The position numbers were made by a program, and so were the translations under genes. A stretch of 63,509 nucleotides of DNA, the filler included, from Guillardia theta CCMP2712 (Eukaryota > Protista > Cryptophyta), in NCBI RefSeq assembly GCF_000315625.1. It is 5 parts of 5 records of this genome, joined end to end, with 100 filler letters (N's around TTAATTAATTAA, not from the genome) between each part and the next. Parts side by side here need not be neighbours in the genome. Positions count along the whole stretch, not along the records: positions 48,922 to 58,178 come from NW_005434264.1; 4 more parts are not named here. One strand, given 5' to 3'. Positions 48,922-58,178 of this stretch are shown one piece after another; the first letter of the stretch is position 1; each line of letters begins with the position of its first letter. The notes below the pieces were generated by a model that ran no database searches, was not told the DNA's origin, and saw nothing but the letters and a program-made list of their open reading frames with translations.

Positions 48922-51186
48922 AAGGCTGCAGTCGGTCTACTGACGGGCCCGGCCGGCAGATCGTCGAGAAACAGGGGGTCAAGGGAGGTTTTCTTCCCCT
49001 GGGAGAAATGTCCTATGGGTTTTGGATCTGCGATATAAAAAAGTCTGTCTTGGTCACGTGATGTGTCACGTGACCGGTCAGGTGAGCTGTCAGCCGGGTC
49101 ACGGCCCCTGTCAGCCGGCTGACATGTCACGGGCCTGCTGACACGGTCCGCTGACCGGTCACGGCCGCCCGGAGAGATCAGGCCCCCGGCCAATCTCCGG
49201 ACACTTAGCCTCCTGGCGGGCCTCCAGGGGGTCTGAGGCGGGGCTGAAGGCTGCAGTCGGTCTACTGACGGGCCCGGCCGGCAGGATCCGTCGAGAAACA
49301 GGGGGGTCAAGGGAGGTTTTCTTCCCCCTGGGAGAAATGTCCTATGGGTTTTTGGATCTGCGATATAAAAAAGTCTTGTCTCGGTCACGTGATGTGTCAC
49401 GTGACCGGTCAGGTGAGCCTGTCAGCCGGGTCACGGCCCCTGTCAGCCGGCTGACATGTCACGGGCCTGCTGACACGGTCCGCTGACCGGTCACGGCCGC
49501 CCGGAGAGATCGGGCCCCCGGCCAATCTCCGGACACTTAGCCTCCTGACGGGCCTCCAGGGGGTCTGAGGCGGGGCTGAAGGCTGCAGTCGGTCTACTGA
49601 CGGGCCCGGCCGGCAGGATCCGTCGAGAAACAGGGGGGTCAAGGGAGGTTTTCTTCCCCCTGGGAGAAATGTCCTATGGGTTTTTGGATCTGCGATATAA
49701 AAAAGTCTTGTCTCGGTCACGTGATGTGTCACGTGACCGGTCAGGTGAGCCTGTCAGCCGGGTCACGGCCCCTGTCAGCCGGCTGACATGTCACGGGCCT
49801 GCTGACACGGTCCGCTGACCGGTCACGGCCGCCCGGAGAGATCGGGCCCCCGGCCAATCTCCGGACACTTAGCCTCCTGACGGGCCTCCAGGGGGTCTGA
49901 GGCGGGGCTGAAGGCTGCAGTCGGTCTACTGACCGGCCCGGCCGGCAGGATCCGTCGAGAAACAGGGGGGTCAAGGGAGGTTTTCTTCCCCCTGGGAGAA
50001 ATGTCCTATGGGTTTTTGGATCTGCGATATAAAAAAGTCTTGTCTCGGTCACGTGATGTGTCACGTGACCGGTCAGGTGAGCCTGTCAGCCGGGTCACGG
50101 CCCCTGTCAGCCGGCTGACATGTCACGGGCCTGCTGACACGGTCCGCTGACCGGTCACGGCCGCCCGGAGAGATCAGGCCCCCGGCCAATCTCCGGACAC
50201 TTAGCCTCCTGGCGGGCCTCCAGGGGGTCTGAGGCGGGGCTGAAGGCTGCAGTCGGTCTACTGACGGGCCCGGCCGGCAGGATCCGTCGAGAAACAGGGG
50301 GGTCAAGGGAGGTTTTCTTCCCCCTGGGAGAAATGTCCTATGGGTTTTTGGATCTGCGATATAAAAAAGTCTTGTCTCGGTCACGTGATGTGTCACGTGA
50401 CCGGTCAGGTGAGCCTGTCAGCCGGGTCACGGCCCCTGTCAGCCGGCTGACATGTCACGGGCCTGCTGACACGGTCCGCTGACCGGTCACGGCCGCCCGG
50501 AGAGATCAGGCCCCCGGCCAATCTCCGGACACTTAGCCTCCTGGCGGGCCTCCAGGGGGTCTGAGGCGGGGCTGACGGTCCGCTGACCGGTCACGGCCGC
50601 CCGGAGAGATCAGGCCCCCGGCCAATCTCCGGACACTTAGCCTCCTGGCGGGCCTGAGAAATGTCCTATGGGTTTTTGGATCTGCGATATAAAAAAGTCT
50701 TGTCTCGGTCACGTGATGTGTCACGTGACCGGTCAGGTGAGCCTGTCAGCCGGGTCACGGCCCCTGTCAGCCGGCTGACATGTCACGGGCCTGCTGACAC
50801 GGTCCGCTGACCGGTCACGGCCGCCCGGAGAGATCAGGCCCCCGGCCAATCTCCGGACACTCGGCCGCCCGGAGAGATCAGGCCCCCGGCCAATCTCCGG
50901 ACACTTAGCCTCCTGGCGGGCCTCCAGGGGGTCTGAGGCGGGGCTGAAGGCTGCAGTCGGTCTACTGACGGGCCCGGCCGGCAGGATCCGTCGAGAAACA
51001 GGGGGGTCAAGGGAGGTTTTCTTCCCCCTGGGAGAAATGTCCTATGGGTTTTTGGATCTGCGATATAAAAAAGTCTTGTCTCGGTCACGTGATGTGTCAC
51101 GTGACCGGTCAGGTGAGCCTGTCAGCCGGGTCACGGCCCCTGTCAGCCGGCTGACATGTCACGGGCCTGCTGACACGGTCCGCACC
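48922..51186. repeat. 332-bp satellite array, segment 1
   Basis: Near-identical units; ORF-track period 332 (49409, 49741, 50073); rearranged units near 50575-50860. Confidence 0.97.
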
Positions 51187-53952
51187 CATTACGTCATGAT
51201 CTTGAATTACTCAATAATGCTTCCGGTACAAAGGCTGGCCCAGTGGGCCAGATCCAATTAGTCCTGAGGGGGGCATAGCTTGCCGTCCGGGGTCCAGAAG
51301 CACACATATCTGCTTTAGACTACCCTCCTTTCCCCTATCAAATGTCGGGTGGTGTAGCACTACCCCGTTTGTGGTTGTGAGGTCCTTCAAGGGGGGTAGA
51401 CAAGGCAAATTGAGGCTGTTCTTGGAGCCTGTTAGTACCGGATCTCGAGCTCCTCGTACAGTTCTAATACGCTTTTAAGGCGATTTCAGGGTGATGGTGA
51501 ACTGTGTTCCACCCCCCCGCACCCAACAAACGGCTGGTTTGAATTTACATGCATGAGTACCCCCATTTTAACCCCAGGTTCTCTTGGGAATGCGAGGGTA
51601 GGTGATTGGAAACAAGACACCTCCACCCCCTGCTTTCCAAGTTTGAAATATAGAAAAAGGGGGTAGGGGTCACCCCTTTCCTTCACTTTCCCCAAATCCC
51701 CCCTCCCTCGACCAAGCAAGAGATGGCGAACCGATCCCTTGCTCGCGCGCGACAACCAATTTGAATGGTGAGAGACTTCGAATCTATGTGTACTGTCATG
51801 TGGATGAATAGAAAACTTCTCTTTGAACCTATCCATAATGGTTGAGACCCATTCTTGGATTCCAAGAGGAAAGAGAAGATTTGAATCTGAGTTCGTTGAG
51901 TTGCTTGTGAATACAAAGAAGCTTTGAAGCATGGTGAGAATAGTTTTAACTGTATGTTAATGATGATGTTTGCTTTCTTGATCTTGTGATGGTGTAAATA
52001 TGCATCAAATACTGTTTTGAGCGGCAAGGATTCAAATTTGCATGGTTACATTATCCCAACAAGCATGTCACTTGCCTTCTTGTGTTTGCACTGAGACGCC
52101 TCGATGATGATGTATCTTAGTTATATAAGCGATTTTCACACTTTGAGAAGGAAAACATGAGGAAAATGGATCAGGGTGCGATGAGAGATGCAACCTTCGA
52201 ATACTTGATGGAAATGCGATCCTCCTTGTTGCGTTGCCACCCTAGCATCCTGGTACCAGAATGCTACGTGAGATGAAAGTGAAGCAGATTTGAAGATACT
52301 TGCTGTTGCTTTTCTATGTTTGCGATGGATTTGAATCAGGTGAACGCCAAAAGAAAGTGGCGTCACCAATGATGCTTGCACATTGTATGCAGATGTATGT
52401 GACTCTCTCTCTGTTGGTGACATTCATTTCATGCAATGAGGAACTTGCACGTCACATACTCTAGCATGGTACTATGCATGTGATAGCGTGCAACTGTTTC
52501 ATTCACAGGGTAGCTTCAATAAAGTCAAATCATCACATCCTTGCTGGTTAGATTCGTCTTACATGCCAATGCTCGTCGCCATGTAATTCTGTACATTCTT
52601 GTGCTTGTGGCTTTGTTAAGCAGCCACACTCCACCATGCCGGGCACTGAGCCTGGCATCGTGCACATGATGGTCATACATATAGCTTTACAAGCAACTAA
52701 TCGAATAGGCAAACAAAGATGAAGAAAGCATGAGACATCAGCTGCCTCCAGACAAGGTTAGCTCTCTGCCAGCGAACGCATCAGCCACTTGAAAGCTGAA
52801 TCATGATTGAGATCGCCAGAATTGTCTGTCGCACTGCAGTTGATTTTTGAAAACAACTCTCATGAGCTGTACTAGCCATTCCTTCTCTCAGAGTCTTCTC
52901 TCATGCAATTCCATTGCCGAGGAGTTTTCTCTCGTGCTTTCAAGTATTGATAGTTGAAGGCTGGACTTGAATGCCGGGCGTTGTGCATCAGTGCACTTCT
53001 CTGAGCAGTGGAAGCAGAGCCATTGCAACAAGCCCATCACAGCTAAGATGATAAATCTGTCGATGAAAGAAGTTCAAAGCCAAAGAGGACGGAGAGTGTA
53101 ACTTGCGGTTTGGAATAAATCTACAGCCAGACACGAGTCTAACTTGTACATAGTCATAATTGTGACAATTGTACGACATGTATGTATATTCTATTGATGT
53201 TACTTTGTCTAGAACAAGAACATGCATCTGAAAGGTTGTAGTGTAATCCCAACATTTTACACATGCGAAGCATCATTATCTAATGTCAAAATATAATGAG
53301 GTAGCGATGCAAATCATGATGAAAACTTCAAGACGTTTGAATTCGGACTGGCATCTTGCATGGCGCCACAGATGATTCAAATCATGAAGTGCAGATCTTG
53401 AAAATCTCGAGGTGCTTGCACTAAAGCGGCTTGACAACTATCGTTCAGCTTCATTCTAACTCAGAAGAAGACGCTGCCTGTTCCAAACATCTCCAAGATT
53501 GCATCAATCTCAAGTTTTTCATTCATGCCAAACCAGCATTCTCAGCCTTCAATCCCATGAGAAGCGATAATCGAGGTGTGACGTACCTCTACGCAATCAT
53601 ACTCCTTCACCACCTGCTTCAGACCTCCATTTCTTCATGTCAGACTTGATACTTGTTTGCTTTGAACGAAGAACACAAATGCCTGTTGCTTCAGCTCTTG
53701 CATGCGCCGACGCCATGCATCATGGAGGGCGCTTCGGTACTGCGTGCCGGCGTGTAGATGGCGACATGTCGGGCGTGTAGGGGAAGCCTCGAAGTCAATT
53801 TGAAACTGGATTTGAAATTTTACATACTTGTAAACAGTACCAGAAAGCAACTTTAAAACCTGTAGTAGACCACCCCACCCCACAATTTGATGTGTTTGCG
53901 AACAACCCCGTTCAGGAAGAAATGGACCAAATTTCAAGATCATGACGTAATG
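51187..53952. mobile_element. TIR element A (2766 bp) inserted in the satellite at ACC|GGT, no TSD
   Basis: 20-bp perfect TIR CATTACGTCATGATCTTGAA (51187-51206 / 53933-53952). Satellite register resumes across it except for 2 bp (TG) missing at the left junction. Confidence 0.8.
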
Positions 53953-54400
53953 GGTCACGGCCGCCCGGAGAGATCAGGCCCCCGGCCAATCTCCGGACAC
54001 TTAGCCTCCTGGCGGGCCTCCAGGGGGTCTGAGGCGGGGCTGAAGGCTGCAGTCGGTCTACTGACGGGCCCGGCCGGCAGGATCCGTCGAGAAACAGGGG
54101 GGTCAAGGGAGGTTTTCTTCCCCCTGGGAGAAATGTCCTATGGGTTTTTGGATCTGCGATATAAAAAAGTCTTGTCTCGGTCACGTGATGTGTCACGTGA
54201 CCGGTCAGGTGAGCCTGTCAGCCGGGTCACGGCCCCTGTCAGCCGGCTGACATGTCACGGGCCTGCTGACACGGTCCGCTGACCGGTCACGGCCGCCCGG
54301 AGAGATCAGGCCCCCGGCCAATCTCCGGACACTTAGCCTCCTGGCGGGCCTCCAGGGGGTCTGAGGCGGGGCTGAAGGCTGCAGTCGGTCTACTGACGGG
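53953..54400. repeat. 332-bp satellite array, segment 2
   Basis: About 1.35 units matching segment 1. Confidence 0.97.
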
Positions 54401-57159
54401 CATAGCGTTGCTTTTCCGGCCGGGCGCTCATAGGAAAAATTGGCAAGATTTTTTTTTTTTCGAAGGGCCTGTGGGGTCCCTTCATTTCATGCCATGTGGG
54501 AGTACCCTACTTTGAGAAGGCGTGTAGGAGGGTACTCGCTCTTAGGAAAATCGTTGCTGCGCAGGGCCAAAGAGGGGTAGGGTGATTTGAATTTGGTTGC
54601 TTGGACACCTCACCACCGTCGGCACGCCAAAACCAAAGTAAAAGTACGAGTTTTAGAAGTATCTGTGGTACCAACTTAATATTGCAGCGTTTATATGGTA
54701 CAAAACGAGGGCCAAACTGGTCGGNNNNNNNNNNNNNNNNNNNNNNNNNNNNNNNNNNNNNNNNNNNNNNNNNNNNNNNNNNNNNNNNNNNNNNNNNNNN
54801 NNNNNNNNNNNNNNNNNNNNNNNNTTCGACTTCCGAGAACCCTCCGTTTGACTTTCGTGGGGGGTGGGGTGGGTATGGAGCATCTCAACTACCCACCTTT
54901 GAACCAGTTTGAAACTGTGTGATAGGGGGTGGGGGGTAGCCCCCATTTCTCATTCCCCAAGCCCCCTCTCCCTGGACGAGCAAGAGGCGATGAAATGGTG
55001 CCTTCCTGACTCGCGAGGATGAACCTTGACATTGAGAGACTTCGAATCCAACCCAACTGAGATAGGAATGAGATGAAGATCTCATATCATACCTGTAAGA
55101 GATGATCGAGCTTCTTTCTCAACTCTGCAGGTTGGGCCAAGGTTTGAATCATCCATCGCGTACTGGAATATGCACCCTAGGTACAAACAATCCGCGTGTG
55201 TACTCGAAAATATTCTTCGAAGACAAGATGAAATTTTCATGAACAGCTAAGCAACTAATGATAGATTCACCATTGAACAGAATCAACTCTGATTGACCCT
55301 TCTTTCAAATTGCCGTAGGTTGAACGTTGAGCTCAAATGCATGATTTGTGAGAAATTTGTATCAAACTGTACCTTAAGCGACTTTGCTGTCTAAATATGT
55401 GTTCTCATGTCATCACTCACTTTCAATTCTTCTAATCTTACGGTCAGGATTCATGCACCTCACTTTTCTATAGAGAAAGCTTTACATGCTCAACCGTTCA
55501 ATGATGCATGAAGAGACGTTTGCACAAAGGATTTCTTTACCTGCCAGGATAGATGACTTTGAATCATCGTTGTTGATCATGAATCACTATACCCATGATC
55601 AAGTGCATTGACAATTGCATTTCCATGTTTCATGACGTTGGATGATTTTTCTGCATTGCAACTAAGTTCTTCCTCTGTCATGACATTTCCACAACGCTGC
55701 AGAAACCTAGTTAGAAATGAAACAATGTGCAGATGAATCTGATATCAATAAATGAGATGTTCTTCGAATCAATCCTGCCTTGTTTGGACAGTTCGCAATG
55801 CTACCATGCAACAGTAGAGTTCCTGTCGCATTTGGCTCTACAGAGGAGTGCCTTGTTCAACAGAGCAAGCACTCGATGATTGTAAACGAACCACAAACAC
55901 TGTGAATCAATAAACAGAATTCCACATTCAGGTGATCATATCTTTATTACAAGCGTTTCAATCTGGGTAAAAGCACAACCGACCTCCTTGTAATCCTGAC
56001 GACGTTCCATCTTTTGCCTGGCGAAGTTATTTCTGTGTTAACCAAGAAGCATGTGACATGTAGCCACATCATAAATGCTGTACGGCCTGGAATATCAGCA
56101 TCTTCAAAGTGCTCGTGTTTGCTGTGACCGTATCATCTGCTTGGCAGCGGCTCATTGATGGACACACGATCTGATGCAAGTTCACACCAGTAATATTTAG
56201 ATGATGCATCATGTGATCAAATGGCATAGACCTTGGTGATTTGCAACATGTTTCATCGTTCCAACACATCCTTGAAAACCGGATGAAAAATCCTTCACGA
56301 ACCACTGGACTTGCTTGTTATCATTCGATAGTGCTGTGGATCATCGTGGTTTCAAGCAATCGAGCAGCTCACTGCTAAAATGCACTGTATTTCTTGCGAG
56401 CCTATCAGCCATCATCGTGAAGACATGTGTTCTTGAGCTCACTGGTGACTGTACGGCTTTTGAACAATCCAGTCACCGTCGGATGATGATTCCCTGTCGC
56501 CTTGTGTGTAATCTCCATCCATCTACTCCAACTCAGTTTCCCTGTCATGCATCGCAGATAGCTTAGGGTATTTCACAACCCGGTTTCGATTGCAACGTAT
56601 CCCTGTGATGGTGATTTTCACTTGTATTATTGATGCTCTTCGCTCACCAAACGATTTTTCGTGAGATCCACGCACTGTACGAAGCACTCCTCAAGGATCA
56701 TCATCTCTACACCTCAGGAATTTCCCATGAGGAGGTTCGGTGAACATCTGATGTCTGCACACGCTGCCGCGGGCTCGCTGTTTGCGAGCCATGGTTAGGG
56801 CAGTACAGAGCGGTGCGACGTGCCTCGAACAAGGGGAGGCTCATGGCGTGTAGAGAGGTCGTTCAAACTCGTTTATAAAATTGTACCATAAGAAGGCTCT
56901 ACAAATTAGTTAGTAGACTACCCCATGATCTCACTGCAACTTCTGGGGTGCAGCCCTACTTCTCTGTTTATACTCAACCATTCCACAATACAGTTTAAAA
57001 TATCTTATTGGAAAACAACATCAGAGTTATAAACCTGAAATTTGGACCCTGTTTGAAATCCTCAAACACGCCACCCCCCAATCCACATAGAAAGCAGAAC
57101 AACCCCCTCACGGGAAAACATACACCCCAAAGCAGAAAAAGCAAAATGTCAACGCTATG
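54401..57159. mobile_element. TIR element B (~2759 bp including a 100-N gap) inserted in the satellite at GGG|CCC, no TSD
   Basis: TIR CATAGCGTTG (54401-54410) / CAACGCTATG (57150-57159). The flanks rejoin exactly to GACGGG|CCCGGCC. Shares blocks with element A. Confidence 0.8.
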
Positions 57160-58178
57160 CCCGGCCGGCAGGATCCGTCGAGAAACAGGGGGGTCAAGGG
57201 AGGTTTTCTTCCCCCTGGGAGAAATGTCCTATGGGTTTTTGGATCTGCGATATAAAAAAGTCTTGTCTCGGTCACGTGATGTGTCACGTGACCGGTCAGG
57301 TGAGCCTGTCAGCCGGGTCACGGCCCCTGTCAGCCGGCTGACATGTCACGGGCCTGCTGACACGGTCCGCTGACCGGTCACGGCCGCCCGGAGAGATCAG
57401 GCCCCCGGCCAATCTCCGGACACTTAGCCTCCTGGCGGGCCTCCAGGGGGTCTGAGGCGGGGCTGAAGGCTGCAGTCGGTCTACTGACGGGCCCGGCCGG
57501 CAGGATCCGTCGAGAAACAGGGGGGTCAAGGGAGGTTTTCTTCCCCCTGGGAGAAATGTCCTATGGGTTTTTGGATCTGCGATATAAAAAAGTCTTGTCT
57601 CGGTCACGTGATGTGTCACGTGACCGGTCAGGTGAGCCTGTCAGCCGGGTCACGGCCCCTGTCAGCCGGCTGACATGTCACGGGCCTGCTGACACGGTCC
57701 GCTGACCGGTCACGGCCGCCCGGAGAGATCAGGCCCCCGGCCAATCTCCGGACACTTAGCCTCCTGGCGGGCCTCCAGGGGGTCTGAGGCGGGGCTGAAG
57801 GCTGCAGTCGGTCTACTGACGGGCCCGGCCGGCAGGATCCGTCGAGAAACAGGGGGGTCAAGGGAGGTTTTCTTCCCCCTGGGAGAAATGTCCTATGGGT
57901 TTTTGGATCTGCGATATAAAAAAGTCTTGTCTCGGTCACGTGATGTGTCACGTGACCGGTCAGGTGAGCCTGTCAGCCGGGTCACGGCCCCTGTCAGCCG
58001 GCTGACATGTCACGGGCCTGCTGACACGGTCCGCTGACCGGTCACGGCCGCCCGGAGAGATCAGGCCCCCGGCCAATCTCCGGACACTTAGCCTCCTGGC
58101 GGGCCTCCAGGGGGTCTGAGGCGGGGCTGAAGGCTGCAGTCGGTCTACTGACGGGCCCGGCCGGCAGGATCCGTCGAG
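57160..58178. repeat. 332-bp satellite array, segment 3 (ends at a gap)
   Basis: About 3 units; ORF-track period 332 (57296, 57628). Confidence 0.97.

Follow-up and report, generated by a model that had tools for sequence, protein, structure and literature searches.

The window analyzed here is a 63,509-nucleotide (nt) stretch of DNA from the cryptophyte Guillardia theta CCMP2712, and the piece studied within it, positions 48922-58178, is a single scaffold of about 9 kb (NW_005434264.1); the coordinates of the satellite and of both inserted elements are given in whole-window numbering. This piece consists of tandemly repeated 332-bp units (63.5% GC), whose copies match one another at 96-100% according to Tandem Repeats Finder (TRF), and it is interrupted twice by segments of lower GC content (about 35-52%), which we refer to as elements A and B. 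Both elements end in perfect inverted repeats, and both lie at the exact center of a short palindrome of the satellite without any duplication of the target, a mode of insertion seldom seen in cut-and-paste transposons. The organism from which the window sequence derives was found in freshwater, lake and runoff metagenomes, as well as in DNA and probable RNA runs carrying one species label. Contigs were taken from three of these read sets, X1, X3 and X7 (the last a runoff metagenome), and transcription was assessed in one raw RNA run, X21. The features of the locus are listed in Table 1.

Table 1. Features of the satellite array and of elements A and B, in window coordinates.
Feature	Position	Strand	Basis
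Satellite array left of A	48922..51186	+	Period 332, 96% matches (TRF)
ACC, left half of the satellite palindrome TGACC|GGTCA; the preceding TG, expected after 51183, is missing	51184..51186	.	
Element A, 2,766 bp, about 45% GC, non-coding, RNA nearly silent	51187..53952	+	Sequence, repeat, open reading frame and read analyses
A left terminal inverted repeat, CATTACGTCATGATCTTGAA	51187..51206	+	Inverted-repeat pair I6; X3 and X7 contigs start exactly at 51187
A block conserved with B: CAGTTTGAAA, AGGGGGT.GGGG, TTCCCCAA, AGCAAGAG and, 47 nt later, GAGAGACTTCGAATC	51617..51807	+	Local alignment
A right terminal inverted repeat	53933..53952	-	Pair I6; X1 contig stops exactly at 53952
Satellite between A and B, 1.35 units, phase continuous with both sides	53953..54400	+	Sequence
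Element B, 2,759 bp assembled, about 2,662 bp real; non-coding; family summed depth above that of A	54401..57159	+	
B left terminal inverted repeat, CATAGCGTTG	54401..54410	+	Pair I24; X7 contig with another 112-nt GC-rich flank up to 54400
Assembly gap of 100 N, true content AAC (3 letters)	54725..54824	.	X1 and X7 contigs; X1 and X3 loose ends
B block conserved with A; RNA coverage starts inside it, at about 54986-54992	54880..55071	+	Local alignment; RNA reads
B transcribed unit 1, first mates on + strand	54986..55900	.	X21
B transcribed unit 2, first mates on - strand	55900..56900	.	X21
B right terminal inverted repeat	57150..57159	-	Pair I24
Satellite array right of B, 3.1 identical units	57160..58178	+	TRF

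The geometry of the two insertions was reconstructed by joining the flanks of each element. The flanks of B join into an exact, continuous satellite over 201 + 201 nt, which places the insertion at the center of the palindrome CGGG|CCCG (half-length 4). The flanks of A likewise give continuous satellite over 187 + 188 nt, only once the dinucleotide TG is re-added after 51183, and the insertion again falls at a palindrome center, TGACC|GGTCA (half-length 5). Perfect inverted repeats extend over 20 bp in A and 10 bp in B; the repeat finder stretches these arms to 23 and 14 bp, respectively, because the flanking ACC/GGT and CGGG/CCCG are themselves the halves of satellite palindromes. A direct repeat was found at neither pair of junctions (0/2 insertion sites), the bases bordering A being CC and GG. 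Each 332-bp unit holds palindrome centers of half-length at least 3 at 13 of its 332 junctions, and of at least 4 at 8 of them, so that, assuming uniform site choice, the probability of both elements falling by chance on centers of half-length at least 4 is about 6e-4. Coincidence cannot account for perfect inverted repeats of 10 and 20 bp located exactly where a phase-continuous satellite is broken, and the presence of two blunt-inserted inverted-repeat segments in this array is confirmed as a real observation rather than a product of chance. An earlier note on this DNA had described the 332-bp satellite as broken by two segments with inverted repeats and common termini (CATnnCGT/ACGnnATG), inserted at palindrome centers with no target duplicated; it had further stated that removing B restores the satellite exactly, that removing A leaves a TG missing, and that a GC duplication could be read for B and not for A. 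The sequences of the elements, the joined flanks and the count of palindrome centers bear out all of these descriptive statements.

The position of the element ends is also marked by the read graphs. Logan contigs are de Bruijn unitigs, and the unitig of an element with a single flank would extend about 30 bases into that flank; the contigs that cover A stop instead exactly at its first base (X3, X7) and at its last base (X1). A branch must therefore be present at the first flanking base, so that the ends of A occur in at least two contexts; the contig ends also set the termini of A at CAT.../...ATG and not at ACC.../...GGT. For B, a contig of X7 matches the element from 54401 inward and carries, before that position, 112 unrelated GC-rich letters ending ...GGCCGGCCGA; the presence of a different flank beside the left end of B indicates that this terminus is a true element end. 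Taken at both elements, the termini look like true element ends. We also considered that ACC/GGT and CGGG/CCCG might be parts of longer repeats accompanied by an 8-bp target deletion, and rejected this parse, which would need a coincidence of 4^-8 at B and disagrees with the A contigs ending at CAT/ATG.

Elements A and B are related, as previously proposed, although in a restricted sense. Their termini follow the common pattern 5'-CATnnCGT ... ACGnnATG-3', with six of the first eight bases alike, and an internal block of about 190 bp is homologous in both; the remainder, which is most of their length, cannot be aligned. The local alignment of the block scores 50, versus a mean of 14.6 +/- 1.1 for shuffled sequences. 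In both elements the block has the identical orientation and a position some 380-430 bp in from the left end, and it contains identical runs of 8-16 bases, including AGCAAGAG and GAGAGACTTCGAATC, whose 47-nt spacing is equal in A and B. RNA coverage begins within this block in B and, faintly, in A; the block is probably a cis element, for example a promoter or a protein-binding region.

Both elements are non-coding. The longest stop-to-stop frames span 156 amino acids in A and 96 in B, and alternative sets of stop codons yielded no convincing frame in either; a frame of 310 codons that appears when TGA is read as a sense codon was discarded, as it does not look protein-like. A Pfam search of ten pieces found no family, with one sub-threshold chance match only, tRNA and Rfam searches of A and B gave no match, and the variant positions between B copies showed no three-base periodicity in a manual count. 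Searches for relatives were equally negative within their scope: exact-product look-ups for four open reading frames (ORFs) of the window returned no match, nor did protein searches with the ORF across the junction of B and satellite, a satellite ORF and an A ORF; a metagenome scan with a degenerate 25-mer spanning both ends of B retrieved only four unrelated chance matches; neither the A repeat nor a pattern for the conserved block had a match in viral and prokaryotic collections; blastn found none for A among plasmids or for B among phages; and a literature search for the terminal sequences of A and B recovered only chance matches to primers. The traits observed here, namely perfect repeats, the absence of ORFs and domains, and the occurrence in more than one context or copy, are those of generic non-autonomous DNA transposons with inverted repeats.

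On this basis, we give roughly an even chance to the reading that A and B belong, as non-autonomous elements, to an unclassified lineage of inverted-repeat transposons whose insertion duplicates no target. Such a lineage would rely on a dimeric transposase from another genomic locus, which would join each end of the element to a target strand at one and the same phosphodiester position, the dyad of a short GC-rich palindrome; this unstaggered joining would leave no single-stranded gaps to be filled, and no target-site duplication would arise. We favor unstaggered integration at the dyad because it is the simplest model that fits both the A and the B sites. We infer, from two sites only, that a transposase would move the elements, that strand transfer would be blunt and that GC palindromes would be preferred. 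A more elaborate version, which we put forward only tentatively and hold to be clearly less probable, is that A and B represent an undescribed cut-and-paste group integrating unstaggered at the dyads of GC-rich palindromes, a GC counterpart of Spy elements with unrelated termini, maybe homing to an amplified satellite and carrying its own opposed non-coding transcription units. The interpretation of the earlier note, a transposon family without target-site duplication, is partly supported: A and B are discrete, related inserts with inverted-repeat ends and no duplicated target, and a family-wide habit of this kind, a preference for GC palindromes or for this satellite and a 'landing pad' role of the array are hypothetical.

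Several observations weigh against the duplication-free transposon reading. The case made here comprises two sites only, both on the same 9-kb scaffold. Taken alone, B can be parsed equally well with a 2-bp GC duplication. The TG lost near A lies 3 bp from the junction, a change that clean blunt integration would not predict. No further complete insertion with two flanks was retrieved from the viral, prokaryotic, metagenome, plasmid and phage collections searched, and a transposase or autonomous copy was found neither in A or B nor in those collections. Contigs bridging the element-satellite junctions of these copies were not seen, those listed stopping at the ends. Finally, the assembled A departs from X1, X3 and X7 at several bases and by a 9-bp indel: every contig of the three sets has a non-reference base at 51224, 52907 and 53063, the contigs of X1 and X3, not those of X7, have one at 51848, 51852 and 53497, and all three sets carry nine extra bases (CGGGGAGTA) after 53787 that the reference A is without. 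The dominant version of A therefore differs from the assembled copy in every run examined, and the latter is either the copy of another strain, another copy of the element, or slightly mis-called.

The missing TG, together with junctions that are blunt and show neither duplication nor microhomology, would also be expected if DNA ending in inverted repeats, such as an excised transposon or an extrachromosomal linear molecule, had been captured by end-joining at double-strand breaks of the satellite, the lack of a duplication then being an outcome of repair and the TG loss resembling a repair scar. The deletions and duplications in the nearby satellite (50560-50905) point in the same direction. 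We nevertheless regard this capture as unlikely: two independent breaks at dyads (with the chance probability given above) would still require a symmetric nuclease, the ends of A and B are intact to the last base of their perfect repeats, the B site is restored without loss, and the TG lost at A is not at the junction itself.

The alternative parse of B, ...ACGG[GC]ATAGCG...CGCTAT[GC]CCGG, underlies a second explanation, according to which both elements are ordinary transposons with a short palindromic duplication, 2-bp GC in the case of B, and the A site was changed after insertion. Systems of this type are known, ISL2EU, for example, making a 2-bp AT duplication (PMC4482050). An ISL2EU-type duplication at both junctions is, however, not found in our data, GC being possible for B only: no parse of A with a direct repeat can be made from its flanks CC and GG, and its site does not look decayed, given that the 20-bp repeats are perfect and that 187 + 188 nt of flank equal the satellite bar the TG. 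In addition, the contigs end at CAT/ATG and so include the C and G, which under this model would belong to the target. We hold this explanation to be quite improbable.

The joined ends of A, or of B alike, would form a perfect palindrome around ATG|CAT (...ATG|CAT...), the targets are dyad-symmetric, and A and B sit in one array in the same orientation; a serine or tyrosine site-specific recombinase that integrates circular forms at dyad-symmetric satellite sites, using the array as a 'landing pad', would account for these features. The target sequences of A and B differ, however, and no core is common to both junctions of A; a 2-bp crossover of the serine-recombinase type also fails for A, whose target center is CG where the joined ends give GC. 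A B-like end beside another flank in X7 also runs counter to this proposal, and no recombinase gene was found by the ORF and Pfam searches made here, so that we see little prospect of its being right. An assembly artefact, in which unique contigs were scaffolded into a collapsed satellite, is scarcely credible in spite of the short scaffold, the mis-sized gap, the positions at which the reference differs from all read sets and the lack of any junction-bridging contig, given that an assembler cannot make perfect inverted repeats at breakpoints or hold the satellite phase across both inserts, and that in three data sets contigs end at the very termini of the elements.

Among known systems, the closest in outcome to the duplication-free transposon reading is Spy, a group of the PHIS superfamily that inserts at the exact center of a 6-bp palindrome, AAA|TTT, with neither duplication nor loss of the target (Han et al. 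2014, PMC4122938). Most Spy copies are non-autonomous, their families are alike in little beyond the termini, and they have been reported from invertebrate animals; the group is defined by the AAATTT target, termini 5'-GGANNNNG and a PHIS DDE transposase (PMC4122938). A and B are also inverted-repeat elements located at a palindrome center without duplication (2/2 sites), but their targets are ACC|GGT and GGG|CCC, and neither is AAA|TTT. Their termini, CATTACGT and CATAGCGT (5'-CATnnCGT), likewise differ from those of Spy. The earlier comparison with Spy therefore holds for the outcome of insertion, the lack of a duplication, and fails for target and termini; judged by these two characters, A and B would be Spy-like elements that are not Spy.

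The other PHIS groups, ISL2EU, PIF/Harbinger, Nuwa and Pangu, make duplications of 2-3 bp (AT, TWA, CWG, ANT) at the insertion dyad, and the ISL2EU termini described usually start with GG (PMC4482050). They resemble A and B in using a short palindromic target at the insertion dyad, and differ in that A has no duplication. P elements share with A and B a combination of CATG-type ends and GC-rich palindromic targets, but they generate 7-8-bp duplications, and none is present at A or B. Their termini begin with CATG. Their target sites have been reported as GC-rich and palindromic (PMC2577343). For A and B, the absence of a duplication is a feature in common with two further types of element. Cryptons and Helitrons are other eukaryotic DNA transposons without target duplication, and neither has true terminal inverted repeats, in which A and B differ from both. 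Cryptons use tyrosine recombinases and have a short core in common with the target, while Helitrons insert at AT and have 5'-TC...CTRR-3' ends. A Helitron identity of A and B was rejected on their sequence, which has inverted repeats and shows neither 5'-TC...CTRR-3' ends nor an A|T insertion.

If the duplication-free transposon reading is true, A and B would add a second duplication-free lineage with another target and other termini, meaning either repeated origins of non-staggered integration or a broader spread of it within one superfamily than has been assumed. Annotation pipelines that depend on target duplications would then miss such elements. Because the host sequence is a satellite, its uninterrupted units can serve as paralogous empty sites, and the claim could be tested directly on the full assembly.

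The length of B has to be corrected for the gap in the assembly. Contigs of X1 and X7 have only AAC between 54724 and 54825, and the loose ends behind 54724 in X1 and X3 read AAC followed by TTCGACTTC, i.e. the sequence after the gap. The 100 N thus stand for three letters, and B is continuous, with about 2,662 bp instead of 2,759. The earlier figure of about 2.76 kb for both segments consequently stands for A (2,766 bp) and not for B. Nor are the two, both described earlier as unique, equally so. Summed across all contigs, which makes it a rough guide to copy number only, the word depth in X3 is about 330-700 for A, about 1,600-2,800 for the ends of B and up to about 12,500 for its interior, and about 0.27-1.9 million for the satellite; the summed depth of B-like sequence is roughly 4-35 times that of A, which looks low-copy. 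B-like sequence occurs in variants with internal deletions, replacements and inversions. The interior of B (54900-56900) is several-fold deeper than its ends (54401-54900 and 56900-57159), and some variants skip or invert interior parts (joints 54613>54995, 54473/55426 and 55601>55670); a composite structure of B, with a more widespread repeat as its interior, is possible.

The RNA of X21 contains essentially no satellite transcripts and almost none of A. B shows two units of opposite orientation that meet near 55900, and the interval 55880-55951 contains TGTAA and AATAAA on both strands. These signals would fit convergent polyadenylated transcripts of B, although the two units may instead be divergent. 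The RNA reads match B mostly in part and at 90-99% identity, indicating that B-like RNA comes largely from other members of the family. Four consensus strings of low agreement suggest that the loose ends of these reads, at 55129, 55489 and 56024, overlap into one GC-rich and apparently tandemly repeated sequence (approximately GGCTCACGCAGATACACCCACGGG, about 27 nt long), which is absent from the window. Pieces of B-like sequence are evidently also transcribed elsewhere, from within another repeat.

The satellite itself varies between read sets. In X7, the depth is about 5.5-7 for A-like sequence, whose longest contigs are about 97% identical to A, and only about 8-12 for the satellite (bins 53900-54299). 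In X1 and X3, by contrast, satellite depth is up to several thousand times that of A; the amplification of the satellite may be strain- or lineage-specific. Left of A, units are rearranged or deleted at about 50560-50905, an interval with several deletions inside the array and one duplication of 44 bp (TRF row 50818-50905); the joins seem, by eye, to be located at short common words such as CTGA, and the array is structurally unstable in this interval. Sat1 of Paramecium caudatum, likewise of 332 bp, was rejected as the identity of the satellite, neither primer from PMC8354472 matching it with up to 3 mismatches allowed.

Two further features concern the sequence of the elements. The outer 12 bp of the A repeat (CATTACGTCATG; 51187-51198 and 53941-53952) form a near-palindrome (10/12) centered on ACGT. 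The hexamer TTYGAA, around whose copies in A and B no longer common context was found, is about four-fold enriched in both elements, with 20 occurrences in A versus 4.9 expected and 18 in B versus 5.3 expected, and its form TTTGAA is strand-biased in A (13:3).

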